Notes under the pieces: model-generated | What the model saw: only the letters and a program-made list of their open reading frames with translations | What the model was told of the DNA's origin: nothing | Database searches by the model: none | Translations under genes and position numbers: made by a program | From: Octopus sinensis | Taxonomy: Eukaryota | Direction: 5' to 3' | NCBI RefSeq assembly: GCF_006345805.1 | Contig: NC_042998.1 | Location: 39,184,001 to 39,248,000 of the forward strand | Length of the DNA stretch: 64,000 nt | Shown here: in pieces, positions 354 through 43,465 of the stretch | Numbering within the stretch: position 1 is the stretch's first letter | How the letters are laid out: every line of letters begins with the position of its first letter

Positions 354-661
354 CTGGCACGTGAAAAACAACATTCAAGCAAGGGTGTTGCCAGTGCCAC
401 CGGACTGGTTCCTCTGCAGGTGACACCTAAAAAACACCATTTGAGTGTGGCCATTGCCAGTACCACCTGACTGGTCCTCGTGCCAGTGGCACGTAAAAGC
501 ACCCACTGCACTCTCAGAGTAGTTGGCGTTAGGAAGGGCATCCAGTTGTAAAAACTCTGCCAGATCAGATTGGAGTCTGGTGCAGCCATCTGGCTCACCA
601 GTCCCCAGTCAAACTGTCCAACCCATGCCAGCATGGAAAGCAGACGTTAAATGATGATGAT
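354..661 (+). mobile_element. 3' end of RTE-type LINE (non-autonomous/truncated copy)
   Basis: Matches 6385-6702 (GGCACGTAAAAGCACCCACT...CATGCCAGCATGGAAAGCAGACGTTAAATGATGATG), followed by (TA)n. Confidence 0.85.
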
Positions 662-664
662 ATC

Positions 665-697
<33 letters not shown>

Positions 698-2078
698 GTA
701 TGTATGTATCTATGCATGTATGTATATGCATGTATGTATATGTATGTATATATGCTGTGCAGTGCGATCAAATTGCAAAGAGAACTTCTCTCCTTAACCA
801 ATCAATGCATGCATGTGCATACACTTAGGTGCATGTATGTGTATTTCTTTATTCTTTTCTTTCACTGGTTTTAGTCAATTAAAATTGGTTAATTACACTC
901 CATTTCCTGATAAGGAACCAGTGGGAATTGGATTACGGCCATGTTAATGCCAAAACACCACCTCAGAAGTTTTAGTTGCTTAAATCAAATTGTATTTAGT
1001 CCGGATAGATTTTGTGAGGAAAAACGGCAAAACTAACTCAGATATAAAACAAAGTAACCAATTTGGAACTAAATAAGTCCCAGTGATTCAATGGTTTGTG
1101 GAAGTTAAATGCAGATTGCAGCTAGATATGAAAACGGATTTTCAATTTCAGCGCTACACAATACAATATAAATATTACACAACTAATGAACGAATATCAA
1201 CAAATAAAACTCGTTAAACAACATTTGATTCACTTTGTTTTTGTGACAATTTGTTCAAAACAAACCAATACAAATTATACTAAAATCAAATTTTCTATTG
1301 CAAAATGTACAAAATAAATGGCAACCGATATCTCTTATTATTTGAATTGATATACCTAATTTCAAATCTTCAAACAAGCCATCTTCTGTCAGAAGTTTCT
1401 TTAAGTAGTTTCTCCATACTGGTGGGTTGTTTGTGTTTTGGCCGAGGGACAAAGTGACTGAAACAGAAAAACAAAAACAAACAAATTTGCAAATATATAT
1501 CAATGCAATAATATTTTTTTTTACAATGCTCAATACATACATACATACACACATTCATACATACATACATGCATACATACACACACATACACACACGCAT
1601 ACATACATACACACATACACACATAAATAGACAGACAGGCACTCAGGTGCAGAGAAATAAAACCAAATTTCATTAGATTCAATTAGATGAGGATGTGTAT
1701 TAGATTGCACCTTAACCCTCACCCTAACCATAAATCTAATCTTAACTTTAAGCATCTCTACACCTGCCTTCTCTTCTTTCTGTAGAAAAAAAATGCTTGG
1801 GAGGGTCGTGCTTTCTTTCTCATACATTTCAGATTTGCTGTCTTACATCATCTACCTGTCCCCTTTGCTTCTTCCAATATATCTACAATTCATAAATGCC
1901 AGTCAATGTTTTCTCTAAATGGCCCGTGTTGTAGGCCTTCTTGCATCTTGGGTCTGAATTACTTCATACTTGTCAAATTCAACCTGGCTGCTTTGGTTGC
2001 CTAAACTATTCTAATTCTATCATTAGCATATATCACTATTTCTCATCAGGTTTTCGAAAGGTCAGCATTTCTTTAAAA

Positions 2079-2341
2079 CAGGGGTTCTCAGTCAAATTCC
2101 AGGTAACCCTTGCAGGGCCAGAAAAGATTTTGTTGTTAAAATTTATCTGCAATGAATCAGTTATATTTCTACAATATAAAAAACACTTTATTTTTTTTTT
2201 ATATACAATCCCTAATAATATTTAATTATAAAAAATGTGATAGGATTCTTTAAGCCTGGAAAGGTCCACTAGAGTAAAATAGGAAATGAAAAGGGTCCAA
2301 AAGGGTCACTAGGTGAAAAAAAAAATGGTTGAGAAACATTG
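2079..2341. mobile_element. hAT (Charlie-like) MITE
   Basis: Termini CAGGGGTTCTCA / TGAGAAACATTG (9/12 inverted match) with perfect 8-bp TSD CTTTAAAA at 2071-2078 and 2342-2349. Confidence 0.85.
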
Positions 2342-3334
2342 CTTTAAAAGAACATAAGTCTTCATCAGCTTTTGATCTGTGGAAGAGAAGTTGTCCATTT
2401 GCTACAAAATTCGAGATGAGATGATTTTATTTTCTTTGTTGGTATAAAAACATTTGATGAATCCAACTGCGAGCATTAGGTTGTTGTTTGAGATTAATTC
2501 AGATTTGTACTCTTTCCTGGATAAATTGTTAATGAAGTATAATTAGGCATATTTAGTAAAAAGCTGATTTAGTAAAAAACACTTGCAGAAGACATTGATT
2601 AAAATGTAATACAGATGAAAATAAAATTATCTAATAAGGTAACGAGTCATTATCATTGAAGAATGAAAAAAAGTCTAAAAATGTAGTCAATCAGTTCTAA
2701 GATTATATAAAGCATAACTTAAGCGAGAAGAAACTTACTCGAGAGACTTAGAGTCAGCAGCCAAAAGACTTTTCCAGACATGTTTATTCTGCAAAATAAG
2801 GACAAAAGAAAACATTGCAGAATGTGCTAGAAATAGAAACCAAAAAATATAATAGTATAATGTACATAGACATACACAGGAAGTCAATAATGAGAGATAT
2901 CATGGTAATATTCGTTCAGGAATATGGTCATCGACTTCCATTCATGTAACACTGCACACTATGCTTGTCTCTTTGGATGCAAAATTATCTTTTCATTAGG
3001 TTTAATTAGGCAGCAAAACTTTAAACAAACATCATTTGCAACCTTTGTTCAGTGAAACGCTTGAATAAATTTGCCAAACTCAAGATTTTAAAATTTCTAG
3101 ATACATATGCTCAAAATATATGCTGGTACTTCAAGAAATCCAGTACAGTTCTTTGCACAAATAAACTTATATGACTGCAAAACATGGATATATGACTGAC
3201 GATGCAGCCATCTTTACATATGTATCTATCTGCTTATACATACAGGACACAAATACATATGTATATATGTATGCATGTACATACAAATATATATATATAT
3301 TGGTATATATATCTATAAAGATATATTATGGGGT

Positions 3335-3374
<40 letters not shown>

Positions 3375-3378
<4 letters not shown>

Positions 3379-3670
3379 CCATGGGATTACATCTAGAAAG
3401 TTCTCCTCCAAAGTACAAGTCTGAGCAAGGTTGTTTATGGAAGACCTGTAGTTCCTCATGCATACCAGCCTCCCCTCTCCATACCACTGATGTAATCCAA
3501 GGTAAAGGCAAAGGGGCTGACACAGCTTAGCACCAGTGACGTCGCAACTTGTTTCTACAGCTGAGTTAACTGGAGCAACGCGAAATAAAGTGTCTTGCTC
3601 AAGAACACAACGTACAGCCCAGTCCGGGAATCAAACTCACTACCTCATGATTGTAAGCCCAATGAGCCAT
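3375..3670 (-). mobile_element. tRNA-derived SINE with CORE-like domain
   Basis: Minus strand has GAGTTTGATTCCC (B-box-like) and TGTGTTCTTGAGCAAGACACTTTATTTC, shared with 30588-30885. Confidence 0.7.
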
Positions 3671-3916
3671 GTAGCTTCACTCTGTATGTGTGTGTGTGTG
3701 TGTGTGTGTTTGAAAAAGTTAAACTAAAACACTCACACTCTAGAAAAACACTTCTTCCCAAAAATGGTTAGTAACATCCTTATGAAACATTTCATAACAT
3801 TTTTTATTTAAATATCATCTTTACACATCAAAAACTGTATTAAGTAATTCTCATAGGCTTTCAAATAGACATATACGCATACATATATATGTAGGTATGT
3901 ATGTATATATATATAC

Positions 3917-4205
3917 AACAATTGCAGCATGGAAGGTGTTTGTAAGCCATTTAAGAAACACACAAAAGCCGTTCGATTCACTTCAACATTTAAGTTTAAT
4001 TTGTCAAAATATTTTCGTCGCTAAAATCCGCGACCTGTTCACTGACAGTGAACAGGTGAACAGGTCGCGGATTTTGTCAGTGAACAGGTCGCGGATTTTA
4101 GCGACGAAAATATTTTGATAAATTAAACTTAAATGTTGAAGTGTATCGAACGGCTTTTGTGTGTTTCATAAATGGCTTACAAACACCTTCCACGCTGCAA
4201 TTGTT
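3917..4205. mobile_element. Foldback/palindromic MITE-like element
   Basis: About 120-bp near-perfect inverted arms AACAATTGCAGC... / ...GCTGCAATTGTT. Confidence 0.85.
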
Positions 4206-4284
4206 TTCGTTTCAGCACACGATCTCAGATCAAATTACTTGCTATGCGAGTACATCTCCGTAATATATATATATATATATATAT

Positions 4285-6700
4285 GAGACAGGTTTATTTA
4301 GCCAGAGGGGAAGCGGATAAGAAAAAATTTGCCAATGTTCTGAGCCGTGAGGATGAAAGACTTGAGGTATTTCGTGTTGCAAGACAGTGTGTGAGAGAGA
4401 ATCGTGATGTGGTAGGAGAGAAGTGTGTTCGCATGGATGATGGTTCACTTGCGCTAAATGAGAATGCAAAGAGAGAGGTTTAGAGATGCCACTATGAAAG
4501 GTTGCTGAATAAAGAAAATGAATGGGATAAAGAGAGTCTGCCGAATGTCAACCCAACAGAGGGACCAGCCATCCGAGTCGAAAATTCTTTGGTAGTTAAA
4601 GCAATTAGAAGCATGAAGACAGGGAAAGCCCCAGGCCCATCAGGAATTACTGCAGAGATGCTCAAAATATCTGGCAGTGTCGGCTATAACCTAGTCACCC
4701 GTATAGTCAACCAGGTGATACACGAAGGAGTCATACCCAATGACTGGTGTAGCAGCATACTAGTCAACTGCTACAAAGGTAAAGGTGATGCCCTAGATAC
4801 AAATAATTACAGAGGTATCAAGCTGTTGGATCAGGTAATGAAGGTTACAGAGAGGGTCATAGCCCAACTAATTAGAGAGAGAATTAGTTTAGATGAGATG
4901 CAGTTTGGGTTCATGCCAGGGCAAAGCACCACTGATGCTATATTCCTGGTAAGGCAGCTGCAGGAGAAATACCTAGCCAAAGATAAGCCCCTGTACCTGG
5001 CTTTCATTGACATGGAGAAAGCCTTTGATAGGGTCCCCCCATCCCTCATCTGGTGGTCAATGAGGAAACTAGGGATAGATGAATGGCTGGTGAGGGCTGT
5101 GCAAGCCATGTACAGAGATGCCGTAAGTAAGGTTAGGGTTGGCAACATGTACACAGAAGAATTCAAAGTAGAGGTTGGGGTCCACCAGGGTTCAGTACTC
5201 AGCCCCCTCCTATTTATCATAGTCCTCCAGGCAATTACAGAGGAATTCAAGACAGGTTGCCCCTGGGAGCTCCTCTATGCTGACGACCTTGCTCTAATTG
5301 CTGAGTCACTATCAGAACTGGAGGAGAAGTTCCAGGTGTGGAAGGAGGGTTTAGAATCGAGGGGCCTTAGAGTCAACCTAGCTAAAACCAAAGTACTAAT
5401 AAGTAGAAAGGTAGACAATCCACAAATGTCTTCAGGAAGATGGCCCTGCTCGATCTGTAGAAAAAGTGTAGGTAGAAACTCTATAAGATGTACCCAGTGT
5501 AAGCTATGGACACATAAGAGGTGCAGCAATGTCAAAGGTAGGCTAACTGGGAAGATAGTTTTTGTATGTGGCAGATGCTCGGGAGCATTGAGCTCCGAAA
5601 ATCTGCAGAAAACAACTTCCGTCACTTTCCAGGGGGAAAAACTAGAAGTAGTTGATAGCTTCCGTTATCTAGGTGACCAAGTCAGTAGTGGGGGTGGGTG
5701 CGCTGAAAGTGTAACTGCTAGAATAAGAATAGCCTGGGCAAAGTTTAGGGAGCTCTTACCTCTGCTGGTGACTAAAGGCCTCTCGCTCAGAGTAAAAGGC
5801 AGACTGTATGATGCATGTGTACGAACAGCCATGCTACATGGCAGTGAAACATGGGCCGTGACTGCTGAAGACATGCGTAAGCTCGTGAGGAATGAAGCCA
5901 GTATGCTCTGATGGATGTGTAATGTCAGTGTACTTACTCGACAGAGCATTAGTACTTTGAGAGAAATGTTGTACCTAAGAAGCATCAGTTGTGGTGTGCA
6001 AGAGAGACGATTGCGCTGGTATGGTCATGTGGCGAGAATGGATGAAGATAGGTGTGTGAGAAAGTGCCAATCCCTAGCAGTTGAGGGAACCCGTGGAAGA
6101 GGTAGACCCAGGAAAACCTGGGACGAGGTGGTGAAGCATGACCTTCGAACTTTAGGCCTCACTGAGGAAATGACCAGCGACCGGGACCTTTGGAAATATG
6201 CTGTACGTGAGAAGACCAGACAGGACAAGTGAGCCCACCCTACTTATGCATGCCTTTCCTCCCTTGGACACAAAGACCTGTTGAGGCAAGCGAAGTCGAT
6301 ATAGAACCTCATGCCAACCCCCTTTGCTTGCGAAGACATATTGGGGCAAGCGAAATCGAAATCGAAATCGAATTGAACCAGCCAGGTGGTACGTAAAAGC
6401 ACTATCCGACTCGTGGCCGATGCCAGCGCCGCCTCGACTGGCTTCTGTGCCGGTGGCACGTAAAATACACCAATCCGACCGTGGCCGTTGCCAGCCTCGC
6501 CTGGCACCTGTGCAGGTGGCACGTAAAAAGCACCCACTACACTCACGGAGTGGTTGGCGTTAGGAAGGGCATCCAGCTGTAGAAACATTGCCAGATAAGT
6601 CTGGAGCCTGGTGCAGCCTTCTGGTTTCCCAGATCCCCGGTCGAACTGTCCAACCCATGCTAGCATGGAGAACGGACGTTAAACGATGATGATGATGATG

Positions 6701-8832: not shown

Positions 8833-9717
8833 AAACCTGGGATGAAGTGGCGAAGCACAATCTTCGAACTTTAGGTCTCACTGAGGAAATGGCTAGAGAC
8901 AGAGACCTCTGGAAGTATGCTGTGCGCGAGAAGACCCGGCAGGACAAGACCATAACCCGTGGCCTTCTACATGGGATGTAGCCAGCCCACTTATGCATAC
9001 CTTCCCTTCTTGGGACACAAAACTCTACTTGTGAAGACCTGTTGAGGCAAGTGAGAATCAGAATCGAAATTGATCAATGGAAATTGCAGCCAAGTTACCA
9101 GTGCCGGTGGCACGTAAGAGAACCATCCGAATGTGGCCGTTGCCAGCGCCGCCCCGACTGGCCTCGGGCTGGTGGCACATAAAAAGCACCATCCGTTTGT
9201 GGCCATTGTCAGCGCCACCCAGACTGGCCTCGTCCCAGTGGCACGTAAAAAGCACCATCCGTTCGTGGCCGTTGCCAGCCTCGCCTGGCCCCCGTGCTGG
9301 TGGCACGTAAAAAGCACCATCCGTTCGTAGCCATCTGCCAGACTCGTCTGCACCACCATCTGTTCATGGCCATTGCCAGCGCCGCCCCGACTGGCCTCGT
9401 GCCGGTGGCACGTAAAAAGCACCATCCATTCGTGGCCATTGCCAGCCTCGCCTGGCCCCCGTGCCGGTGGCACGTAAAAAGCACCATCCGTCCATGGCCG
9501 TTTGCCAGCTCCGTCTGGCACCTGTGCGGGTGGCACATAAAAAGCACCCACTATACTCATGGAGTGGTTGGCGTCAGGAAGGGCATCCAGCCATAGAAAC
9601 ACTGCCAGATCAGACTGGGCCTGATGCAGCCTTCTGGCTTCACAGACCCCAGTTGGACCGTCCAACCCATGCTAGCATGGAAAGCGGACGCTAAATGATG
9701 ATGATGATGATGATGAT
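8833..9717 (+). mobile_element. Short 5'-truncated copy of the RTE LINE with expanded 3' UTR subrepeats
   Basis: Start matches the RT C-terminus at 6115-6230; 7 GGCACRTAA units; (GAT)n tail. Confidence 0.88.
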
Positions 9718-16489: not shown

Positions 16490-19375
16490 TGCTCCTCAGG
16501 TGTTCTGCGCAACGCAGCAGCTGAGCAAGAGTCTTTCTTGTGCATGGCGCAAAGGATTGTCCAGCAGCTGACCTGGCTACACCAAGCACAAACAAGGAAC
16601 CTTGCCCACCACTATGCAAGACCACCACAGTCACACCCAAATTCGGTATGTGACACTCTAATTGTATACATAAGGCAACGTAATATAGTCATATACAATA
16701 TATATTGCCCACACGGATGCTCCAAACCACATAGGCAAGTTTGAAGATTGCCTCACAAGAATTAAAGAAATCCTCATGAATCTGGAACACCACGTGACCA
16801 TATTTCTTATGGGTGATTTCAACTTCCCCAACGACAACTGGCCCGAAGGTCTCATACTCTCAGGAATGACTCATTGCAAGCAAGCACAAGTGGAGTGCCT
16901 GCTCAACCTCACCAATGCCCTATTCATGGAGCAAGCTGTACTCAGACCAACTAGGGCGAATAACATTCTGGATCTCTGCTTCACGAACAATATGGACATC
17001 ATTTATGATGTGAAAGTGACACCGACATTAGTCTTGGATCACAACATAATAGAGCTGTCTATGTTTGGGCCGAAAGTAACCAGAGACATACAGCCTAAAG
17101 GAAGCACCCGAAATCTCTCCAATCTGAACTTCCACAAAGCAGATTGGAAATCGATCCAAAAAGAGATCCTCAGAGAGGACTGACCGAAATGTCTCTCCAC
17201 ACTGGACATTGACATGAAACTAGAATGTTTCATGTCTTCTGTGCAAGCCGTATGCCAGAATTATGTCCCAGAGCACAAGGCCAAAACAAATAGGAGCAAG
17301 ATTCCAAGAGACAGGAAGATCCTCATGAGACGATGGATGAAGATTACAAATCGACTCAACCAACATCCCAAAAGTAGCGAAAGATCCCACCTAAAAACAA
17401 CACTCATGGAGATCGAAAAAAGGCTGCAACAATTCTATGTGAGAGAGAAAGCAGACAAAGAAGTCTGGGTTATAAGAACATTAAGTCAAACCCAAAGGCA
17501 TTCTTTCATTATGCGAAAGAAACAGCCTCAGTGCACTACAAGATAGGACCCCTCCTCCAACTAAGATCAGTAAGGTACTGAATGACCAGTTCAAAAGTGT
17601 CTTTACCACCCCGTTGGAACACAGACAAGTGAACGAGCCAATGGACTTCTTTGCCACCTCACCTATAACCAGCGAGGCAGTTACAATGGAATACATCGAC
17701 ATTAGCGAAGAAGATATACTATTAGTCATAGATGAAGTGGACACAAACTCAACTGCTGGTCCAGATGGTTTCCCAGCAATCCTCCTCAAATCGTGTAAGC
17801 ATGCCCTGGCAAAACCCCTCCAGATTCTCTTCCAGAGCTTTCTTAAAAATGGCAAACTGCCAAGCAACAGGAGGGAATAATATGCCCAATACATAAAGGG
17901 GGGAGTAGAGAAGATGCCAAAAACTATAGGCCTATCTCTCTGACTTCACACATCAGCAAAGTCATGGAACGGATAGTCAGAGGGAAACTAATCGCATTCC
18001 TTGAAGAAAATAACTTGTTGAGTGATACCCAGCATGGTTTTCGACCAGGTAGGAGCTGTCTGACCCAGCTATTACAACATTATGACTGGGTGTTGAGGCA
18101 GTTACTCAACAAATCAAATGAGGACGTAATATGCCTTGATTTTGCAAAAGCTTTTGATAAAGTGGATCATGTTATGATATGCCACAAACTGCGTGACCTT
18201 GGCATAGCTGGAAAACTTGGAGAGTGGTTACATGACTTCCTGAAAGATAGGAGTCAGGCAGTAGTGGCTAATGGAGCCACCTCTATGAACACACAAATAG
18301 TGAGCGGTGTTCCACAGGGCACTGTCTTGGAACCACTGCTTTTTATAGTGGCCCTCTCAGATATGCCCTCAAATGCCCGGATAGCCACCCTTGCAAGCTA
18401 TGCAGATGATACGAAAGTCTCGCAGAAAATACAGAACCCCAGCGATGTTGCATACCTGCAGCAGGAGTTGGACTCAATTTACAAATGGGCTGAGGATAAT
18501 AATATGCAGTTTAATGCTGAAAAATTCCAGGCCCTGCGCTACCAGCATCCAAAACTGAATATGAAACTTACAGGGTACACCGTTCCACAGGGAATTTCAA
18601 TCCCAGAGCCAAAGTCTGTGAGGGACCTGGGTATCGACATGAGTGATGATACCTCTTTCCAAGTGCACATTACCAGGATGGCGACAAAGCGCAGACGACT
18701 GGATGGATGGATCCTAAGAACATTCAGAACCAGAAAAGGAAACCATGATGGTCCTCTAGCGGACATTCGTTCTCAGCCGCCTGGATTACTGCTCACAGCT
18801 ATGGTCACCCACCAGTGTGAAATTAACAACGGACCTTGAAGCAATCCAGAGAATTTTCACAAAGAAGATCGTCTCTTTGCAACAGCTCAGCTACTGGGAA
18901 AGGTTGAAACTGCTAAGACTCTACTCCCTGGAGAGAATATGGGAGAGGTATGCAGTAATATATATCTGGAAGATCCTGGAAGGAATTGTGCCAAATTTTG
19001 GCATTGTAAGCTACACCAATGCTAGAACGGGACGACACTGCATAGTGTCAAAGATCCCAGCAATGCCATCATACTTCAGGACCAGTTACTGCAACAGCCT
19101 GGGTTTCAAGGGCCCACAGCTTTTAATATTCTCCCAACGAAACTTGCACAAAGTAAATGTAGGGGTTTTTAAATCAAAGCTGGACATCTTCCTGCCGAGA
19201 GTCCCAAATGAACCTACCTCATGGCAAGAGGTGCAAATGAGGGTAGCTATATCAAACTCCATTCTTCACCAAGTGCCACATATTAGAGGAGGCTCTTAGT
19301 AATAACAGTGTAGCAAAACGGCGGTGCATCAGCATGGCCGCATCTCTGAGCTGAAACTAGAGAGAGAAAAAAAAA
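16490..19375 (+). mobile_element. CR1/L2-group LINE, ORF2 (APE + RT) with several stops/frameshifts
   Basis: Endonuclease MGDFNFP, TRANNILDL, LDHNII; RT NYRPISLTS, QHGFRPGRSC, LDFAKAFDKV, SGVPQGTVL, YADDTK; C-terminal LYSLERxxERY; A-rich tail. Confidence 0.92.
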
Positions 19376-20406
19376 CTATTCACTTCAGAAATAATGTATT
19401 TATTAACTCATTTGATTCTTGCCTTTGTTGCACAATATTGGCTTCTCGAGTTATTACATGCTATGTAACCTTGTTCACTTTCATTATTTATTGCCGAAGG
19501 TAGTGGAATTAAGAGAACTGGAACCATTCATAGTTTATTTAAAAAAAAGTTAAATTGTTTTTTTTAAAGAGAGAACAAAAACGATACTAATGGAGAAAAA
19601 ACAAAGGAAAAAAATAAAGATTATAAACTACGAGTAAAAACGTTCAAATAGTACAGCATGAAATTTGGGGCTCATGCAACCTTTTCATTTTTCATTTTTA
19701 TATAACATTTTTCTCATTTTTCATTCGTTTTATATTTTTGTCCCAATTGTGTCGTTCTGTCTGTCCTTGTGCTGTCCCTTCTATGTTTGGCCCTTGTGGC
19801 AGGAAATAAAAATCGTTATTTATTGTATACCAGACTGACTTGACACTGCACGCTAAATTAGAGGCCACTGACAAACAAGACGAATATTAAAGGAATTTAA
19901 TTTGAACCCGAGTAATACAACAAATATGATATTTAAGGTCCCTAATTATTGAAAATTTCCTAGATGAGGTAGTCATGGTTTTTTTTCTCTCTTAATAATT
20001 TGATCTTTTGATATTTTTTCTTTCATTTCTCTTGTAAAAATATGTTGTTAATATAAATTATCTATAAAAAAAAATAAATTTTAAAAAAAATGTATATTGA
20101 AGTATATTTATAACTGAGATTTAGAGAATCAGCCTAGTGTCCTTAGTCAATCTGACTAAAACAAAATATCTCATCTGGTCAAGGCTGGTTGAATAAGAGT
20201 ATGGCACCCGTTGTATTCATCGTGTCGAGGGAAACGAAAACTGATTCAGCGCTTAGTAATAATAGTTATTATATAGCTTGGCCTGTTCTTTTGCCGTTAA
20301 CATAACGACTGCCTGAGAGACAATTATTGGCTTTCATCTGAGGAAGCAGAATGATGTTAATGTATCACAAATAATAAACATTTTCAAGGTACTTGTTAAT
20401 TGTCGT

Positions 20407-21015
20407 GGTCCCGGTTTTGCACACGCGAATTCGCGCGCGCGCGCGCGCCAGACGTAGGTACTCGATACTCGAGATCCTACGAGGTGACTTGCGCATGCGC
20501 AGTGCAGAATTCGCGCGTGCGCGTTAACCCCCCCCCCCCCCCCGAAAAAAAAAAGGATTTTTTTTAAAGATACCTTTCTGCTTTTTAACACAAAAAGGTG
20601 TTGGATTTAACTAAAAATATATATATGTGTGTGTGTGTGTGTATATATAACATATTCAATTTTACACAAAAAAATTACATAGTCGCTTTCCTCGCGGATT
20701 TACAGATAAATGAATTAATTACTATTTTACAGAATAAAATTAATGAATTAATTATATAAATTAAATAATTCTTGAAAATTAATTATTATTAATACTCGAG
20801 ATCCTACGAGGTGACTTGCGCATGCGCAGTGCGCGATTCGCGCATGCGAGTTAAACCCCCCCCCCCCCCCGGAAAAAAAAAAGGATTTTTTTAAAGATAC
20901 CTTGGTCGCTTTCCTCGCGGATTTACAGATAAATGAATTAATTACTATTTTACAGAATAAAATTAATGAATTAATTATATAAATTAAATAATTCTTGAAA
21001 ATTAATTATTATAAT
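20407..21015. repeat. CpG-rich subterminal module, partially duplicated in tandem (mirror at about 25945-26550)
   Basis: ACTCGAGATCCTACGAGGTGACTTGCGCATGCGCAG...poly-C/poly-A block at 20467 and 20794; (CG)8 run at 20432-20448. Confidence 0.85.
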
Positions 21016-21140
21016 AATATTTTTTGAACAAAGTAAAAAGTAATTACTTTTTTTTTACAGAAACGCGAACGGGGAATTTTCAGTTTAAAGTTATAAATAA
21101 ATACATTTCATGTGTAATGTAAAATAGTAGTCAATTAATT

Positions 21141-23264
21141 AAATACCTTCTTTTTCTGGGGTATTATTCTTGTTCAAACTCGTCACATATTTGTAACTTT
21201 TCGATGTAAACCTTTCAATGTAAGTCTTAAAAAGTTGCAGCAGCTTAGCAGAAATGTCACGTTATAATTTCTACAATGCAATGGTTTCAATACACGCGGA
21301 AGATCATACCCATTCAAACTTTATATCATTCTGAAACATCTTTCAGAATATTCATCACACGACCGTTTTCATTTTGTCCAAATATTTTTTTTCACAGAAA
21401 TTCATCAAAATTGTGGAGATTTTATGACAGTGTAGCAAATTAGTAATCAACTAATTAAATACCTTCTTTTTCTGGGGTATTATTCGTTCAAACTCGTCAC
21501 ATATTTGTAACTTTTCGATGTAAACCTTTCAATGTAAGTCTTAAAAAGTTGCGCAGCTTAGCAGAAATGTCACGTTATAATTTCTACAATGCAATGGTTT
21601 CAATACACGCGGAAGATCATACCCATTCAAACTTTATATCATTCTGAAACATCTTTCAGAATATTCATCACACGACCGTTTTCATTTTGTCCAAATATTT
21701 TTTTTCACAGAAATTCATCAAAATTGTGGAGATTTTATGACAGTGTAGCAAATTAGTAATCAACTAATTAAATACCTTCTTTTTCTGGGGTATTATTCGT
21801 TCAAACTCGTCACATATTTGTAACTTTTCGATGTAAACCTTTCAATGTAAGTCTTAAAAAGTTGCAGCAGCTTAGCAGAAATGTCACGTTATAATTTCTA
21901 CAATGCAATGGTTTCAATACACGCGGAAGATCATACCCATTCAAACTTTATATCATTCTGAAACATCTTTCAGAATATTCATCACACGACCGTTTTCATT
22001 TTGTCCAAATATTTTTTTTCACAGAAATTCATCAAAATTGTGGAGATTTTATGACAGTGTAGCAAATTAGTAATCAACTAATTAAATACCTTCTTTTTCT
22101 GGGGTATTATTCGTTCAAACTCGTCACATATTTGTAACTTTTCGATGTAAACCTTTCAATGTAAGTCTTAAAAAGTTGCAGCAGCTTAGCAGAAATGTCA
22201 CGTTATAATTTCTACAATGCAATGGTTTCAATACACGCGGAAGATCATACCCATTCAAACTTTATATCATTCTGAAACATCTTTCAGAATATTCATCACA
22301 CGACCGTTTTCATTTTGTCCAAATATTTTTTTTCACAGAAATTCATCAAAATTGTGGAGATTTTATGACAGTGTAGCAAATTAGTAATCAACTAATTAAA
22401 TACCTTCTTTTTCTGGGGTATTATTCGTTCAAACTCGTCACATATTTGTAACTTTTCGATGTAAACCTTTCAATGTAAGTCTTAAAAAGTTGCAGCAGCT
22501 TAGCAGAAATGTCACGTATAATTTCTACAATGCAATGGTTTCAATACACGCGGAAGATCATACCCATTCAAACTTTATATCATTCTGAAACATCTTTCAG
22601 AATATTCATCACACGACCGTTTTCATTTTGTCCAAATATTTTTTTTCACAGAAATTCATCAAAATTGTGGAGATTTTATGACAGTGTAGCAAATTAGTAA
22701 TCAACTAATTAAATACCTTCTTTTTCTGGGGTATTATTCGTTCAAACTCGTCACATATTTGTAACTTTTCGATGTAAACCTTTCAATGTAAGTCTTAAAA
22801 AGTTGCAGCAGCTTAGCAGAAATGTCACGTTATAATTTCTACAATGCAATGGTTTCAATACACGCGGAAGATCATACCCATTCAAACTTTATATCATTCT
22901 GAAACATCTTTCAGAATATTCATCACACGACCGTTTTCATTTTGTCAAAATATTTTTTTTCACAGAAATTCATCAAAATTGTGGAGATTTTATGACAGTG
23001 TAGCAAATTAGTAATCAACTAATTAAATACCTTCTTTTTCTGGGGTATTATTCGTTCAAACTCGTCACATATTTGTAACTTTTCGATGTAAACCTTTCAA
23101 TGTAAGTCTTAAAAAGTTGCAGCAGCTTAGCAGAAATGTCACGTTATAATTTCTACAATGCAATGGTTTCAATACACGCGGAAGATCATACCCATTCAAA
23201 CTTTATATCATTCTGAAACATCTTTCAGAATATTCATCACACGACCGTTTTCATTTTGTCCAAA
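21141..23264. repeat. Tandem array, ~314-bp unit x ~6.8 (left arm)
   Basis: Unit starts (AAATACCTTC) at 21141, 21457, 21770, 22084, 22398, 22711, 23025. Confidence 0.95.
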
Positions 23265-23318
23265 AATACATTCGGGAGATCATACCCCTTCAAACTCTAT
23301 ACCATTCGGAAAGATGTT

Positions 23319-24176
23319 TCAGAGAATATTCATCAAGCAATCGTGTGCAGTTTGCCCATATTGTTCCTTCCACAGAAACTCATCAAGGTACGAGTCCACC
23401 ATGGTGGAATGTACCCCCATCATCGTTTTAAATTTTCTTTTGGCATTCTTCCAGTAACATTCCACAGAATTTGTGTGTACACCTGTTAGCGGATCCACAA
23501 AATTCTGGGAATGGTTTACTGTGAAATGGATGTATTTTGGTGTCACATCCATTTCTGCAATACCATTATAGGCGGGCCAGCAATCCGAATGAATTGTTGT
23601 GCCCGGTCTAATAAATTTTTTGATGATGGGTAGCAGAGTTTCCGAGGAACGGTCAGCTACGAACAGTATGAAGCCTTTTTTGTCTTCTCTGTCGTACCCT
23701 CCAAAGACCCATCTCTCTTGTGGCGTTCTTCCTCTATTGTATTTTCTCTTACACATCAGACTTTCATCTACTTCAACAATGTGTCCGACACCACCAATTT
23801 GGTATGGATTCTTCATTAGATTATTGCTACAGATATCTCGCATGTATTGATACCATTGAATAACGCTAGGTTTTGACAATCCAGTCATTGCTATTGCTCC
23901 TGTTATTGTTAGGTTACTGCCCCAACAATATATAACATGAATGAAATCGTGCAGTTTCAACCTGCTATTTTCGAGATACGATTTCTTTCTAATCGACTCT
24001 TTTTCCCCTTTGTGAGTTGGGCAGCGAAAAATTTTTTCCTGGTTGTGTTTTATAAGAGTCATCTCTCTATGGCATTTTGAGCAAATTGGAGTTGAGGAAC
24101 TCAACACTTTTTTGTCCTTTAGGAATGAATAGATACTGTCAAAATCTTTTACGATGCTTTCTATCTCATACAACAT
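23319..24176 (-). CDS. Merlin/ISXO2-like DDE transposase, 285 aa (294 aa if a 2-nt insertion near the end is removed)
   Basis: N-terminal CxxC...CxxH, GGVGHIVEVDES (D), KRKYNRGR...WVFGG, IHSDCWPAY (D), HTNSVECYW (E), SYLDEFLW. Confidence 0.92.
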   Translation of the reverse strand: MLYEIESIVKDFDSIYSFLKDKKVLSSSTPICSKCHREMTLIKHNQEKIFRCPTHKGEKESIRKKSYLENSRLKLHDFIHVIYCWGSNLTITGAIAMTGLSKPSVIQWYQYMRDICSNNLMKNPYQIGGVGHIVEVDESLMCKRKYNRGRTPQERWVFGGYDREDKKGFILFVADRSSETLLPIIKKFIRPGTTIHSDCWPAYNGIAEMDVTPKYIHFTVNHSQNFVDPLTGVHTNSVECYWKNAKRKFKTMMGVHSTMVDSYLDEFLWKEQYGQTAHDCLMNIL

Positions 24177-24929
24177 TTTTTCTTAATTTAACTCAGTTCA
24201 ACTGATGAAGATAAACTGAAAATAAAGTTATTTTCAGTATCAGTTAGCTGACTATCATTCAGTTAGCTCTGATTGGTTAGATTTTAGAACTTTCTCTGTC
24301 CCCTCTTTCAAACTAATTTTTGTTGTGGGGGGGGGGGAGAAAGATGAACGATTTAAAATAAATATATCTTAATTGTAGTGTGAGAAAAGTATATATATTC
24401 TGATGATAAAATATATTCTTTCAAAAACATTTGTAGTCCTACTATGAAAGATTGTTTTGGGCTGAAACCCAAGTTAACGAAAGTACATGAATAAGGATTT
24501 GACTGTCATGATGTTGAGTCTTATTAGATTCTTGTCCGATTCAGTATATTGTCATGTGCTTTCTGAAGTAGGCAATAAAAACCTTATAAACAAACTGTTA
24601 TCTACATAATACTGTGGTAATTAGACAAACATTAACTGAAATTAATTATGCCTTCCTAACAGAAAATGACATAATATGTATTTATTATGTGAACATGTAA
24701 AGGAAACTGAAAATTGTGATATGTTCCTCTCATTACTGGCACTTATTAACTTGAGAAAAATAAAAAGGCCACATATAGAATGAGATATTCGAAAATAAAA
24801 AAATGTTAAAAGATACTCCTCGGAATTAAAATCATGACAAAGATTTTCAAAATCCCTTTTTTGCGATAGATGGAGATTGCCTGAAGTAAATAAGGGAGAA
24901 GGAGAGAGAAGACAGCAGAAGGAACAGCA

Positions 24930-25822
24930 TTGATGAATTTCTGTGAAAAAAAATATTTGGACAAAATGAAAACGGTCGTGTGATGAATATTCTGAAAGAT
25001 GTTTCAGAATGATATAAAGTTTGAATGGGTATGATCTTCCGCGTGTATTGAAACCATTGCATTGTAGAAATTATAACGTGACATTTCTGCTAAGCTGCTG
25101 CAACTTTTTAAGACTTACATTGAAAGGTTACATCGAAAAGTTACAAATATGTGACGAGTTTGAACGAATAATACCCCAGAAAAAGAAGGTATTTAATTAG
25201 TTGATTACTAATTTGCTACACTGTCATAAAATCTCCACAATTTTGATGAATTTCTGTGAAAAAAAATATTTGGACAAAATGAAAACGGTCGTGTGATGAA
25301 TATTCTGAAAGATGTTTCAGAATGATATAAAGTTTGAATGGGTATGATCTTCCGCGTGTATTGAAACCATTGCATTGTAGAAATTATAACGTGACATTTC
25401 TGCTAAGCTGCTGCAACTTTTTAAGACTTACATTGAAAGGTTTACATCGAAAAGTTACAAATATGTGACGAGTTTGAACGAATAATACCCCAGAAAAAGA
25501 AGGTATTTAATTAGTTGATTACTAATTGCTACACTGTCATAAAATCTCCACAATTTTGATGAATTTCTGTGAAAAAAAATATTTGGACAAAATGAAAACG
25601 GTCGTGTGATGAATATTCTGAAAGATGTTTCAGAATGATAAAAGTTTGAATGGGTATGATCTTCCGCGTGTATTGAAACCATTGCATTGTAGAAATTATA
25701 ACGTGACATTTCTGCTAAGCTGCTGCAACTTTTTAAGACTTACATTGAAAGGTTTACATCGAAAAGTTACAAATATGTGACGAGTTTGAACAAGAATAAT
25801 ACCCCAGAAAAAGAAGGTATTT
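24930..25822. repeat. Tandem array, same ~314-bp unit x ~2.8, inverted (right arm)
   Basis: Unit ends (GAAGGTATTT) near 25194, 25508, 25822. Confidence 0.95.
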
Positions 25823-27004
25823 AATTAATTGACTACTATTTTACATTACACATGAAATGTATTTATTTATAACTTTAAACTGAAAATTCCCCGTTCGCGT
25901 TTCTGTAAAAAAAAAGTAATTACTTTTTACTTTGTTCAAAAAAAATTATTAATAATAATTAATTTTCAAGAATTATTTAATTTATATAATTAATTCATTA
26001 ATTTTATTCTGTAAAATAGTAATTAATTCATTTATCTGTAAATCCGCGAGGAAAGCGACCAAGGTATCTTTAAAAAAATCCTTTTTTTTTTGGGGGGGGG
26101 GTTTTAACTTTTTAACTCGCATGCGCGAATCGCGCACTGCGCATGCGCAAGTCACCTCGTAGGATCTCGAGTATTAATAATAATTAATTTTCAAGAATTA
26201 TTTATTTATAATTAATTCATTAATTTTATTCTGTAAAATAGTAATTAATTCATTTATCTGTAAATCCGCGAGGAAAGCGACTATGTAATTTTTTTGTGTA
26301 AAATTGAATATGTTATATATACACACACACACACACATATATATTTTTAGTTAAATCCAACACCTTTTTGTGTTAAAAAGCAGAAAGGTATCTTTAAAAA
26401 AATCCTTTTTTTTTTCGGGGGGGGGGGGTTTAACGCGCACGCGCGAATTCTGCACTGCGCATGCGCAAGTCACCTCGTAGGATCTCGAGTATCGAGTACC
26501 TACGTCTGGCGCGCGCGCGCGCGCGAATTCGCGTGTGCAAAACCGGGACCACGACAATTAACAAGTACCTTGAAAATGTTTATTATTTGTGATACATTAA
26601 CATCATTCTGCTTCCTCAGATGAAAGCCAATAATTGTCTCTCAGGCAGTCGTTATGTTAACGGCAAAAGAACAGGCCAAGCTATATAATAACTATTATTA
26701 CTAAGCGCTGAATCAGTTTTCGTTTCCCTCGACACGATGAATACAACGGGTGCCATACTCTTATTCAACCAGCCTTGACCAGATGAGATATTTTGTTTTA
26801 GTCAGATTTGACTAAGGACACTAGGCTGATTCTCTAAATTCTCAGTTATAAATATACTTCAATATACATTTTTTTTTTAATTTATTTTTTTTTATAGATA
26901 ATTTATATTAACAACATATTTTTACAAGAGAAATGAAAGAAAAAATATCAAAAGATCAAATTATTAAGAGAGAAAAAAAACCATGACTACCTCATCTAGG
27001 AAAT

Positions 27005-27450
27005 AAAACATTTCTGCCACTGAAGCTCTTCAATTATTTTTAATCAATGTTTTTTCCACCTCTCTCTGCTTTGGGCTTTCGTTATTGCGATGTTCCCGTC
27101 CCAATCTACGTCTCAGTATATTTGATCCAGTCTCTCTTTGCTCGTCCTTTCCTCCTTTGCCTTCTAATTGTCCAAATATGACGACATTTACATACGACCC
27201 AGTCATTCTGCTAATGTGGCCGAACCAATGAATAATTCTTTGTTTTGTTTTTATGATCATTCTCTCTGCGCAGACAAAGCATTAATTTGTTCGAAGACTG
27301 AACAGTTGGTCCGATAGTCCTGCAACATAAAACCAAGAATTCTGTGAAAGCATGTCATATCGAATCCTGACCAATTCAATGTTTTTAACTCTGCCTCTCT
27401 TGCAATATACACAATCGCTGGCATCGTAGATTACGATGACCTCACTTCGA
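27005..27450 (-). mobile_element. RTE LINE C-terminal fragment abutting the Merlin right end
   Basis: FDMTCFHRILG and RIIHWFGHISRM...GQLEGK resemble RTE RLRWFGHI...GxVEG. Confidence 0.6.
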
Positions 27451-36360: not shown

Positions 36361-36361
36361 A

Positions 36362-36531
36362 CATACATACATACATACATACATACATACATACATACAT
36401 ACATACATACATACATACATACATACATACATACATACATACATACGTACGTACATACATATATACATACATACGTAATACGTAATTAGATAATACATAC
36501 ATACGTAATTACATACATACATACATACATA
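36362..36531. repeat. (TACA)n microsatellite
   Basis: Directly visible. Confidence 0.9.
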
Positions 36532-37614
36532 CACCAACAAAAACACAACCAGCCAGATATTGTTGTGTGGAACCACAAGAAAACTATGTGTTCTGTTACG
36601 GAAATCAGCTGCCCCTGGATAGCAATGTGGTTAGAAAAATACACGAGAAATAGGACATCTAGGGACCATTAATAAGGATTTTGTAAATCCAGTGCCCATA
36701 CATACCGACCCGACTGGAGCAAAGTATAGCTGAACTTGGGATCTTGAGCGAAATGCATCTCCTTAATTTATACCCTACAATTGATCCCGATATCTGGGAC
36801 TATGAAAATCTAAAAGACCTTCTAAAGATTTAGAAGACAGTGAACATGCTTTCCCTCACAACCTTGCTACCAGGTAGCGGTGAGCGACCAAAATCTACTC
36901 AGAAAAGAGACAGAGAAGACTATACATATATACACACACACATATTTATATATGCTCACACAAGCATAACTCATTCTTTCACACACACACTAAAGTAGAA
37001 ATACATCCACATATTATGCGTATCGTCCAATGCATAATTGTTGGGTGTTACAAAAGGTAATCTTAAAAATGCCGTTCCTTCGGTTTATTGTTATATTTCA
37101 TTGTCATTCAATGACTCCAAATAAGTCCATGAAATTATAAAACCGGTTTTGTAAAGGTTGTGGGATCAATGGCAAGTTTATTCATAGATTACAGCACCAC
37201 TGAAGGTGACTTGGTATATCTTAAATATTTGTGAACTATAAAAGCTAAACAGTCATGTGAAAAACATCTGTCATTACTCCTGAGATAAACTAAACAAAGC
37301 GAATTTCCCATTATATTTTGCCGACGCATTTCGTACGTGTGTGGGTTTGTGTTTAGGTTTGTGTGCATGTTTGCAGAGAAATTGATATGACGACAGTCTC
37401 TTTTGCACCATGATCTATCCATTAGCGTTTTATTATTCTGTTATCAAACAATTATTTTTTTCAAAATATAAGTTTTCAAATTTCAACATATTCTTTTAAA
37501 CTTTCCATTAGTGTTACTACATTAAGTCTGAAAAATTAAGTTACTTTTACATATATAGGTTGACAGACAGACAGACTGAATGACTGACAGACTGAAGGAC
37601 GGAAAGACAGCTAG

Positions 37615-38092
<478 letters not shown>

Positions 38093-40938: not shown

Positions 40939-41730
40939 ATGTCTGCAAAAATTAGGATCGCCAGCGACGCCCTCAGACCTTTTAATGGTGAAGGCGATGT
41001 AGTGGCCTGGATTCGCAAAATCAGGCTGGTGGCAAGACTGCAATGTATAAGCGATGTGGCAAGACTGCAATGTATAAGCGATGTGGCAAGTCTTATGGCG
41101 CTGTATTTAGAAGGGAGTGCCTTAACGCTATACCTTGAGATGGATGAAGAGGAACGGCTCAGCGAGGAGAACATAGAGCGACGCTTGCGGGATGCCTACA
41201 CGGAATGCGAATACACAGCTTTTGCTAAGCTAGGTGCGATCCGGTGGACGGGAGGCCAAGTGGATGACTATGCAGCAGAAGTTAGAAGGTTAGCGAATCT
41301 GGCTGGGTTTGCCCGAGAAGGGCTGGAGAGAGCAGCCCGGCTGGCGTTTGTGAATGGGTTCCCCGACGATGTAGGGATTCACCTACAACGACTGCCCGGG
41401 ATTAAAAAGATGGCGCTGAGCGAACTCGTGGATCAGGCCCGCGTGTTAACGAGACACTCTGGGTGGAAGACGATAGCGATGGCGGTGACGGGGGCGCGTA
41501 AAGACGGACGACATCCCGAGAAAGACGTACAGAAGCTTATCATGCAACGAGAGCGGCCGTTCTCAGAACGGTGTTTTAGATGCCAGGGATCGCACATGGC
41601 GCGGGACTGTACGCAGCCGGGGCCCGTTTGCTATCGATGCAGGCAGACAGGGCACATTTCCCGTGATTGCGACCAGGGAAACGACCGCGGGGAAGTTGCT
41701 GCCTCTCGAACTTTCCCCGCAAACGAGTAG
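40939..41730 (+). CDS. Gag, 263 aa, with two CCHC-type zinc knuckles
   Basis: CFRCQGSHMARDC and CYRCRQTGHISRDC. Confidence 0.88.
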   Translation: MSAKIRIASDALRPFNGEGDVVAWIRKIRLVARLQCISDVARLQCISDVASLMALYLEGSALTLYLEMDEEERLSEENIERRLRDAYTECEYTAFAKLGAIRWTGGQVDDYAAEVRRLANLAGFAREGLERAARLAFVNGFPDDVGIHLQRLPGIKKMALSELVDQARVLTRHSGWKTIAMAVTGARKDGRHPEKDVQKLIMQRERPFSERCFRCQGSHMARDCTQPGPVCYRCRQTGHISRDCDQGNDRGEVAASRTFPANE

Positions 41731-41734
41731 AGGC
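41676..41734 (+). promoter_or_regulatory. -1 programmed ribosomal frameshift signal (G GGA AAC + H-type pseudoknot)
   Basis: Heptamer in the gag 0-frame; stem 1 41687-41697/41709-41720; stem 2 GCCTCT 41701-41706 / AGAGGC 41729-41734; -1 frame opens into protease-like sequence. Confidence 0.8.
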
Positions 41735-41800
41735 GCTATTGGAGACGCTGCCATTGATTGACGTGGAGGCCGAGGGGAAGTCGTTCAAGACCCTCGTGGA

Positions 41801-43465
41801 AATGAGATCCCAGAGCTGAGTTCCAGCGTCAGCAGGAGAGAGCTGTTCTCGGTGTGTGGGAAGTTGGTCGGTCACTACCCGATCGCTGGATGGCTGCGCA
41901 CGGCGTGTGGTTACACCAAGAGACGAGCAGAAGGGGAGAGGTGGGGCGACAAGGTGGGAGAAGGGACGGTGGCGATGATGCAAGAAATCCTAGAGAGGAC
42001 GAGAGCGGAAGACCCGGTCAGGGGGAACTGGTACGTGCCCAAGACGGAATCCAGGACCGTCTGGTGTGATGCCAGCAGTATAGCGATAGGGGTGGTGTTG
42101 GCAATCGAAGGCGCTGTGGTGGAGGACGCGGCCTGGCTTCGGAAAGCAGATGATTTCAACCACATCAATGTCGCCGAATTAGACGCGGTGCTGAAAGGGG
42201 TGAACTTGGCCTTGAAATGGGGGCTGCGCACGATTGAAATCCAGACGGATTCGGCCACTGTTCTTAGCTGGGTAGGATCGGTGATCACCGGTAAAAGGAG
42301 AGTGCGGACGAAAGGTGCTGCGGAGATGTTAGTGAAGCGCCGTCTAGGAGTTCTAGGTGAATTGATCGCCGAATTCGGACTGAAGCTGAGCGTGGTTTTC
42401 GTGCCTTCGGAGAAAAACAGGGCGGACGTACTGACCAGGGTGAAAAGAGCGTGGTTGGAAGAACCGGAGGAGGCCCCGAAAGGTATAGCTGCGGCGTGTC
42501 GGTTAGATGACTCTGAACTGAAGAAACTGCATGCTATGCATCACCTGGGTGTGGACAGGACCCTGTATCTGGCGAAGAAAATTGATGCTGACGTCACTAG
42601 GAGAAGCATCCGGAAGGTGGTCGGGAGCTGCGACAGGTGTCAGTCCATCGACCCTGCTCCATGTGCGCATGAACAGGGAAGCCTTTCCGTGGAGCAGAGC
42701 TGGAAAAGGCTAGCTGTGGATGTGACACACTACCGTCAGCGAATGTACCTGTCCATGGTCGACTGCGGGCCGGGCCGGCTGGCCATTTGGAGGGAGTTGA
42801 GATCGGGCATTGCTGACGAGATCGCGCTGATCCTGAACGGGATATTCTTAGAGAGAGGTCCCGTGGAAGAACTACTGATGGACAACGGGGCGGCGTTTCG
42901 TTCGGAAGCATTGAGGGTTATGCTTGATCGGTGGAATGTGCGACGCTTGTTCAGAGCAGCGTATAGGCCGAGCGGTAACGGGATCGTGGAGAGGCACCAT
43001 CGGACAGTCAAGGCCATAGCGGAAAGAGGGCACATTTCGCCGCTTGAAGCAGTTTTTTGGTTTAACTTGTCTCCCCGATCCGGACAAGCTGAGGAATCTG
43101 TGCCGCAGAGAGCTGTGTTCAAATATGAATGGAGGCACCCGAGCAAAGCGCCGGAGGATCACGAGGAAGAGAAGGGACCCGTTCGCGTGAAAATAGGGGA
43201 GGAAGTCTGGGTCAAGTCACCAAAGGCGCGCTGTACGTCTCAATGGAGCAGAGGAACGGTGACGGCGGTCAATTCCAGAAACAACGTATCCGTAGATGGA
43301 ACGCCACGACACGTCTTGGGCCTTCGCAGGATTGTCGCTTCGACGGACGACGATTCTGGAGAGGGGGAAAACGAGGAGCCCAGCTTGAGAAGATCCCGAC
43401 GAGCAAGGCGCTCTCCTGGTTGGATGGTGGACTACGACATGGAGCGGAGAGATTGTGATCTTTAA
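41801..43465 (+). CDS. Pol remnant: RNase H + integrase (open frame, no RT, no own start)
   Basis: WCDAS..HINVAELDAV..TDS (RNase H); HHCC finger (H..HLG..CDRC); LAVDVT, LLMDNG, NGIVERHH (DDE). Confidence 0.88.
   Translation, partial: NEIPELSSSVSRRELFSVCGKLVGHYPIAGWLRTACGYTKRRAEGERWGDKVGEGTVAMMQEILERTRAEDPVRGNWYVPKTESRTVWCDASSIAIGVVLAIEGAVVEDAAWLRKADDFNHINVAELDAVLKGVNLALKWGLRTIEIQTDSATVLSWVGSVITGKRRVRTKGAAEMLVKRRLGVLGELIAEFGLKLSVVFVPSEKNRADVLTRVKRAWLEEPEEAPKGIAAACRLDDSELKKLHAMHHLGVDRTLYLAKKIDADVTRRSIRKVVGSCDRCQSIDPAPCAHEQGSLSVEQSWKRLAVDVTHYRQRMYLSMVDCGPGRLAIWRELRSGIADEIALILNGIFLERGPVEELLMDNGAAFRSEALRVMLDRWNVRRLFRAAYRPSGNGIVERHHRTVKAIAERGHISPLEAVFWFNLSPRSGQAEESVPQRAVFKYEWRHPSKAPEDHEEEKGPVRVKIGEEVWVKSPKARCTSQWSRGTVTAVNSRNNVSVDGTPRHVLGLRRIVASTDDDSGEGENEEPSLRRSRRARRSPGWMVDYDMERRDCDL

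Follow-up and report, generated by a model that had tools for sequence, protein, structure and literature searches.

We analysed a window of 64,000 nucleotides from Octopus sinensis (NCBI RefSeq assembly GCF_006345805.1, contig NC_042998.1, positions 39,184,001 to 39,248,000 of the forward strand; "the window" below means this whole stretch), which contains a Merlin transposon with kilobase-long inverted arms. Self-comparison of the window revealed an inverted pair, 19955-22035 and 27004-24930, that aligned over 2,089 nt at 98.5% identity and enclosed a Merlin/IS1595-type transposase gene. An earlier note on this DNA had taken the whole interval 19955-27004 as a Merlin element whose arms are built from tandem copies of the 3' end of its own transposase. 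The inverted arms are present as described; the outer limits, however, are not those of the transposon. Alignments to every sister copy in the genome covered only positions 434-6616 of the interval, and since the sister copies match nothing outside 20388-26569, the transposon is 20388-26569 (6,182 bp) and the outer 432 bp on each side are host DNA. The window element is a copy of a young O. sinensis Merlin family, and we consider it likely that its kilobase arms are structural by-products of recombination-prone long inverted repeats. The parts of the locus are as follows.

19949..19957, no strand: TTGAAAATT, candidate remnant of the original target-site duplication on the left, matching the right TTGAAAATG at 8/9 positions and spanning the outer-left junction
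19955..20387, plus strand: putative inverted copy of the right flank, containing an inverted target-site copy at 20379-20387
20388..20464, plus strand: true left terminus, 5'-GGTACTTGTTAATTGTCGTGGTCCCGG...; in sister copies this terminus has perfect 8-9-bp duplications next to it
20465..21120, plus strand: subterminal direct repeats and a short link to the array; blocks a 20465-20576, b 20682-20794, a' 20794-20903 and b' 20905-21016
21121..23267, minus strand: 3'-side array, 6.8 x 314-bp units, sense to the gene, the gene-end copy in each unit being decayed
23290..24176, minus strand: Merlin/IS1595-type transposase gene (open reading frame 23319-24176, restored stop codon 23290-23292)
24177..24929, minus strand: 5' spacer of 753 bp, from the start codon to the 5' arm
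24930..25842, plus strand: 5'-side array, 2.9 x 314-bp units, antisense to the gene
25843..26569, minus strand: right subterminal repeats and true right terminus
26570..27004, plus strand: right flank, probably the original one, opening with TTGAAAATG (26570-26578); putative template of 19955-20387

From outside to inside, each family arm consists of a terminus of ~77 bp, subterminal direct repeats in the order a-x-b-a'-b', and the 314-bp units. Both ends of the window element open with GGTACTTGT..., and the alignable family arms of this copy are ~1.65 kb long, with the 3'-side array extending to 23267. Tandem Repeats Finder placed the two 314-bp arrays at 21121-23264 (6.8 copies, 99% matches) and 24930-25842 (2.9 copies). 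A subterminal array of 112 bp x 5 was considered and rejected, as the program reported none there and alignment resolved the region into the a-x-b-a'-b' order, that is, two repeats of ~220 bp. The left array lies directly downstream of the gene in sense orientation and the right array begins at the DEFL codons (24930), both as the earlier note had it. On the 3' side the real gene end meets unit position 24-27 through a TATT microhomology in 8/8 full-length copies. On the 5' side the innermost unit begins at position 1 and adjoins the 753-bp spacer, of which only the gene-proximal ~256 bp are common to related subfamilies; the inner edge of this array is at once a unit boundary and the start of the gene homology.

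The window open reading frame (ORF; 285 codons, minus strand) carries the DDE_Tnp_IS1595 domain (PF12762, E=1.4e-20, profile positions 25-152 of 153), in agreement with the ISXO2-like transposase that had been recognised between the arms. This domain is shared by 823 homologues, and the top protein match was an O. sinensis predicted protein at 96% identity. The frame is broken by a 2-nt insertion near 23321-23324, which the earlier note had removed in its reading. The insertion is private to the window copy; in sister copies without it the frame continues to ...KHLSEWYRV*, and in two copies (L031 and L039) the frame is intact and gives a protein of 294 aa. Motif resemblance and domain coverage pointed to candidate catalytic residues D137 (EVDES), D198 (HSDCW) and E239 (SVECYW) in the intact L031 protein, with spacings of 61 and 41. 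All copies begin with GGTACTTGT... (5'-GG start) at both ends, and perfect 8- or 9-bp target-site duplications border 11 family members, the window copy itself being without a direct one. The 5'-GG termini and a DDE_Tnp_IS1595 domain, along with the target-site duplications, are the published hallmarks of Merlin (PMC8101967), and the family is therefore a genuine Merlin, an IS1595-like DDE cut-and-paste transposon, and not an assembly artefact. The arms, from at least 1,009 bp (L037) up to several kilobases, fall outside the range of 24-462 bp originally described for Merlin terminal inverted repeats (TIRs). This range does not really define the superfamily, as the Repbase elements Merlin-1_DR and Merlin-N5_DR are listed with TIRs of 1,000 bp, and the statement in the earlier note that Merlin TIRs span tens to a few hundred bp is outdated.

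The assembly (a 2.7-Gb genome) was searched with the unit, the gene and the terminus. The genome-wide search, which the earlier note had proposed, revealed seven further full-length copies with the same architecture (L031-L037, on contigs C18, C11666, C8504, C1, C29, C4 and C14; 95-98% identical), together with element fragments and at least 247 candidate termini. Perfect target-site duplications of 9 bp were identified for L031, L032, L035 and the related element L038, and of 8 bp for L034 and L037; in L036 a 9-bp duplication is offset by 4 extra bases at the left end. Perfect duplications of 8-9 bp likewise flank five shorter derivatives (L054, L055, L056, L058 and L059), which are 232 to 2,919 bp long. 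The order of parts was the same in all eight full-length copies, which lie on different contigs, and the number of 314-bp units varied as follows.

Window copy: 6.8 units in the 3' arm, 2.9 in the 5' arm
L031: 6.8 units in the 3' arm, 2.9 in the 5' arm
L032: 2.9 units in the 3' arm, 6.9 in the 5' arm
L033: about 4 units in the 3' arm, 11.9 in the 5' arm
L034: 3.8 units in the 3' arm, 1.9 in the 5' arm
L035: 1.9 units in the 3' arm, 4.9 in the 5' arm
L036: 1.9 units in the 3' arm, 1.9 in the 5' arm
L037: 1.8 units in the 3' arm, 0.9 in the 5' arm

The count per arm therefore ranges from 0.9 to 11.9 (13-fold) and is often unequal between the arms of one copy. Long, tandem-repetitive inverted arms whose repeat number varies between arms and between copies are a foldback-like trait. 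The L033 contig also holds, close to its end (L033 9863-10000, G000:C8504), a second left terminus of the family ~155 bp past the right end of the 8.4-kb copy, and that copy has no matching target-site duplication.

The inverted arms could in principle have been produced by a palindromic or chimeric long-read join during assembly. The differences between arms, in the window copy and its sisters, are mostly insertions or deletions of 1-5 nt within homopolymers or simple runs, at 5-15 gap events for each 730 bp, as is typical of long-read error, and no other locus in the genome shows the inverted flank of the window copy. An origin of this kind is nevertheless very improbable. Against it stand, for the arms of the family, the identical order of parts in eight copies from different contigs and the perfect target-site duplications around most of them. 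For the flank, an old target-site copy lies at the outer junction with microhomology, which is not something an assembler creates. The homopolymer differences do suggest assembly noise or residual long-read error in the details, and the unit counts, the 2-nt frameshift and the frameshifts in several copies may for that reason be imprecise or unreal.

Comparison of the units revealed concerted evolution. Within one element, units differed by 0.5-1.3% in most copies (up to ~3% in L033, L035 and L036), to the same extent whether they came from one arm or from both, compared with 2.3-5.4% between units of different subfamilies. The units define three subfamilies: the window copy with L034 and L037; L031 with L032; and L033 with L035 and L036. 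The non-array parts of the arms gave the same picture, with substitutions of 0-0.55% between the arms of 7/8 copies against a mean of 1.73% between copies.

We also examined the homology of the unit with the transposase gene. Unit positions 1-120 matched the last 32 codons of the gene and the first 20-25 nt of its 3' untranslated region (UTR) at 79% identity (E=3.4e-19 in the 2.7-Gb genome), the homologous part of the gene being its last ~120 nt (23268-23386). With the 2-nt insertion removed, 76/96 coding nucleotides and 17/21 following nucleotides were identical, close to the hand count of 75/96 and 21/25 given earlier. Against shuffled units, a control that the earlier note had named, the local alignment score was 31 standard deviations higher. 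Its central observation, that a ~314-bp unit carries a homologue of the end of the transposase, was thus confirmed.

A second type of element, type B (L038-L041), has a gene about 90-91% identical to that of the window copy, which is of type A. In type B the unit sequence is single-copy and represents the true gene end (...GQNENDCVMNILKHLSEWYKI*) followed by ~190 nt of downstream sequence. The units retain GQNEN where the type-A gene reads GQTAH, and the least-derived units were 90.6% identical to the type-B gene end compared with 85.5% to the gene end of their own element. At sites polarised with L041, seven changes were private to the unit, seven were private to the type-A gene, one was shared by the unit and the type-A gene, and one by the unit and type B. 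On these identities and site counts, the copy of the gene end held in the unit appears to date to about the A/B split and to be ancestral-like rather than foreign, which agrees with the proposal that the end of an older relative's gene was its source. A derivation of unit positions 286-314 from the sequence upstream of DEFL or from the 5' spacer was rejected: no similarity was seen by eye, and type B has these positions as contiguous 3' downstream sequence. Unit positions ~206-302 (window 25135-25231) matched many dispersed loci of ~100 bp at 76-78% identity and may be a related miniature inverted-repeat transposable element (MITE) or a captured repeat.

The more distant relative L042, with a gene ~81-83% identical, has inverted arms of ~620 bp whose inner edge lies at unit position ~135, ~40 nt past the stop codon. 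As its TIR is already this long and ends at this point, we favour an inward extension of the TIR as the simplest path to the type-A arms. First, a long TIR with its inner edge ~40 nt downstream of the stop codon would have been extended inward by ~135 bp, so that the 5' arm acquired the 3' UTR and the last 32 codons in inverted form. Tandem duplication would then have acted on a segment of 314 bp whose start is precisely this new inner edge. Unequal exchange and arm-to-arm conversion may since have kept the units of one element alike while their number drifted, and the real gene tail, presumably still under coding constraint, would have diverged from its non-coding copies. This order of events is what we infer from the element anatomy, the family and the behaviour of the units.

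The earlier note had instead proposed that the gene end of an older relative was amplified into a satellite, which was then recruited into both arms. The closer match of the unit to the type-B than to the resident type-A gene end would fit such a history, as would the abrupt junction between gene and array at unit position 24-27, as if the gene had recombined into a pre-existing array. However, no free 314-bp array was found among the scored genome hits, every unit match of at least 92% identity lying inside one of ~ten element loci. Moreover, the 5' arm of the least-repeated copy, L037, contains just one incomplete unit, L042 already holds the whole 3' UTR within a long TIR, and the type-B counterpart of the unit is a single-copy gene end with 190 bp of downstream sequence. 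We regard a satellite-first origin as unlikely, the long TIR of L042 offering the simpler path.

Several points weigh against inward extension followed by tandem duplication, in addition to the homopolymer differences described above. That the TIR was extended, and not shortened in L042, is judged from a single outgroup element. The type-B copies include none with an undisturbed 5' arm from which to read the state of the A/B ancestor. The site patterns of unit and gene amount to a near-trichotomy drawn from only 117 nt. Finally, there is no demonstrated mechanism by which a tandem-unit boundary would come to coincide with the inner edge of a TIR.

Rearrangement of the gene end has recurred in related elements. 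L038 (G000:C4:59164641-59167960), of type B, is a near-perfect palindrome with 1,449-bp arms (99.6% identical) and a perfect 9-bp duplication; its 5' half has been replaced by the inverted 3' half, reaching 766 bp into the gene, in an independent inverted duplication. L040 carries at 4379-5107 (G000:C14:52369379-52370107) an independent tandem array, 182 bp x 4.0, of the last ~50 codons of the gene, with its distal edge 1 nt away from where the TIR of L042 has its inner edge. L040 also holds a nested insert of ~1.6 kb bounded by 117-bp inverted repeats (2499-2615 and 4048-4164). In three of the four type-B copies (L039, L040 and L041) homology ends ~55-260 bp upstream of the start codon and there is no recognisable 5' terminus; small inverted segments lie at this boundary in L039 and L040, one 94-bp piece being 100% identical to the centre of the L038 palindrome.

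The L040 array edge, the L038 palindrome and the coincidence of the type-A unit boundary with the TIR inner edge suggest that the base of the inverted-repeat stem may be a breakpoint hot spot. A broader idea would be that the TIR inner edge repeatedly makes gene-3'-end arrays (314 bp in type A, 182 bp in L040) and that the resulting sense and antisense tails, by read-through, give hairpin RNA and lead to small-RNA self-silencing of the transposase. The copies of the gene tail, sense in the 3' arm and antisense in the 5' arm, would then be a built-in self-limiting device; we think this combination highly doubtful.

The shorter derivatives bear on the role of the arrays. L054, L055, L056 and L058 have no units, yet have perfect target-site duplications, and L059, with one unit on one side and only ~97 bp of the right end, likewise has a perfect duplication. 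The arrays thus look dispensable for movement, as array-less derivatives still transposed, and we propose that the functional ends are the outermost ~100 bp. An alternative is that the arrays are functional and under selection, as secondary transposase-binding sites or transposition enhancers in the manner of the Galileo TIR repeats. Units are indeed present in both arms of all eight autonomous-type copies, the THAP domains of Galileo bind sites within its TIR repeats (PMC3688188), and the unit holds a short palindrome (AATTAGT..ACTAATT). This role would be hard to reconcile with perfect duplications around array-less derivatives and around a copy with ~97 bp of one end, or with a 13-fold variation in unit number. 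In addition, no extra copies of the terminal 12-30-mers or of the terminal motif were found inside the element or its arms, and words common to the unit and the terminal or subterminal region were not above the level in shuffled sequences. On this evidence, a selected function of the arrays appears quite unlikely.

The window copy differs from its sisters in its flanks. The outer segments, 19955-20387 and 26570-27004, are inverted copies of one another (432 bp, 99% identical). They are absent from all sister copies and were found only at these two sites genome-wide, except for a distal dispersed repeat of ~110-150 bp; ~290 bp are unique to the locus. The 9 nt at the two element ends are reverse complements of each other. 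The right 9-mer, TTGAAAATG, is matched by TTGAAAATT exactly on the outer-left junction, where there is a 2-nt AT microhomology; a match of at least 8/9 to TTGAAAATG occurred in 22/9,140 15-bp windows of the stretch (0.24%). The dispersed repeat runs 3-4 nt beyond 27004 on the right and is cut at 19955 on the left. As the 8/9 match falls exactly on the outer-left junction and the mirror match is poorer, the right flank was taken as the original. The mirror model, in which the left flank would be the original, was rejected: close to the outer-right junction the left 9-mer has at best a 7/9 match, at a distance of 31 nt. The dispersed repeat itself (26860-27008, with its inverted copy at 19955-20100) is an old sequence, 72-83% identical to at least 40 loci and purine-rich at one end.

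From this anatomy we infer repair of a one-ended cut. The left end would have been cut without completed excision, and the 3' tail of the left arm may then have annealed to the identical right arm, primed there and copied 432 nt of the right flank. The copied end would finally have been rejoined to the old left target-site copy through the AT microhomology. With the right flank as the original, we propose that the empty site would read ...CCCTAATTA-TTGAAAATG-TTTATT... A point against this account is that it rests on an 8/9 match and on 3-4 nt of a dispersed repeat.

The outer segments could also be read as the 432-bp arms of another foldback element or MITE, at the centre of which the Merlin element is nested. 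Their outermost 110-150 bp do belong to a dispersed repeat family with an alignable end within 3-4 nt of 27004. However, the other ~290 bp are confined to this locus, and the sequence common to the dispersed copies is just ~110-150 bp long. The Merlin ends have no direct 8-9-bp duplication, and the adjacent flank lacks the palindromy that a central insertion would need. No other genomic copies of the 432-bp sequence were found as paired inverted arms without Merlin. Nesting is therefore exceedingly improbable, and repair of a one-ended cut remains our preferred account of the flanks.

Elsewhere in the window, two reverse-transcriptase ORFs were identified on the plus strand at 4502-5911 and 17964-19299 (RVT_1, E=6e-32 and 3e-25, respectively). 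The second ends ~650 bp left of the Merlin locus, which thus adjoins a non-long terminal repeat (non-LTR) retrotransposon remnant. Remnants of a retrotransposon gag-pol region (zinc knuckle, RNase H-like domain and integrase core) lie at 40939-43465 on the plus strand. Other tandem repeats were found at 9101-9548, 36361-36533, 37679-38091 and 46468-46872; the kinds among them are GC-rich repeats of 63-167 bp, (ACAT)n, (TAGA)n x 104 and a 157-bp repeat x 2.6.

The octopus family is of interest as a natural series. Within one genome it shows TIR growth, from arms that end past the stop codon to arms that have absorbed and multiplied the gene tail, along with an independently palindromised sister copy and another with its own gene-tail tandem array. 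Such a series may be used to follow how long inverted repeats lengthen, why long TIRs arise convergently across unrelated superfamilies and how transposon repeats give rise to proto-satellites. In addition, the class of scar seen in the window copy, if it reflects a one-ended cut repaired off the opposite arm, can produce inverted duplications of host DNA. Views on how Merlin elements move are unchanged by the octopus family.

Merlin elements are eukaryotic relatives of IS1016/IS1595 with TIRs of 24-462 bp in the founding description, and internal tandem repeats have been noted in many of their families (PMC8101967). The octopus family resembles them in its transposase of ~294 aa (DDE_Tnp_IS1595, with an N-terminal Cys/His cluster), its 5'-GG termini and its 8-9-bp duplications (PMC8101967), and differs from the founding description in arms of at least 1 kb to several kilobases. 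The earlier note had found the architecture unfamiliar among described Merlin elements, which is too strong. In zebrafish, the Repbase elements Merlin-1_DR and Merlin-N5_DR have TIRs of ~1,000 bp with tandem arrays that are symmetric between the arms, such as 113 bp x 5.2 at 531-1114 and 3193-3775, and Merlin-2_DR has 79-bp arrays near both ends (S1 Table, PMC8101967). Compared by table description rather than by sequence, the zebrafish elements differ in that S1 Table does not derive the unit from the coding end of the transposase. A literature search found no eukaryotic transposon with its own coding 3' end in the TIR and no paper on this octopus family. The recruitment and amplification of a piece that includes the element's own transposase coding sequence, in copies with intact ORFs, was likewise not found in the literature searched.

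The closest parallels lie in foldback-like elements of Drosophila. Galileo, a member of the P superfamily in D. mojavensis and D. buzzatii, has foldback-like TIRs of 0.3-1.26 kb (PMC3573991, PMC3688188). As in the octopus family, its TIRs have grown by tandem-repeat expansion and by taking in neighbouring internal sequence in inverted form, repeat numbers may differ between the TIRs of a single copy, and chimeric or rearranged copies occur (PMC3573991). Galileo belongs to another superfamily, however; its recruited segments are non-coding spacers and its longest TIRs are in non-autonomous copies, whereas the piece recruited in octopus includes 32 codons and occurs in copies whose ORFs are intact. 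Tetris of D. virilis, a foldback-type element (PMC4079207), likewise has long inverted arms made largely of tandem repeats, and its repeats are tied to satellite formation; it differs from the octopus family, for which the scored genome hits revealed no array of 314-bp units outside an element. Taken together, these comparisons show that foldback-like dynamics of long TIRs were already known, and the octopus family is a variation on them, with no new mechanism, in which the tail of the element's own gene has become part of the arms.

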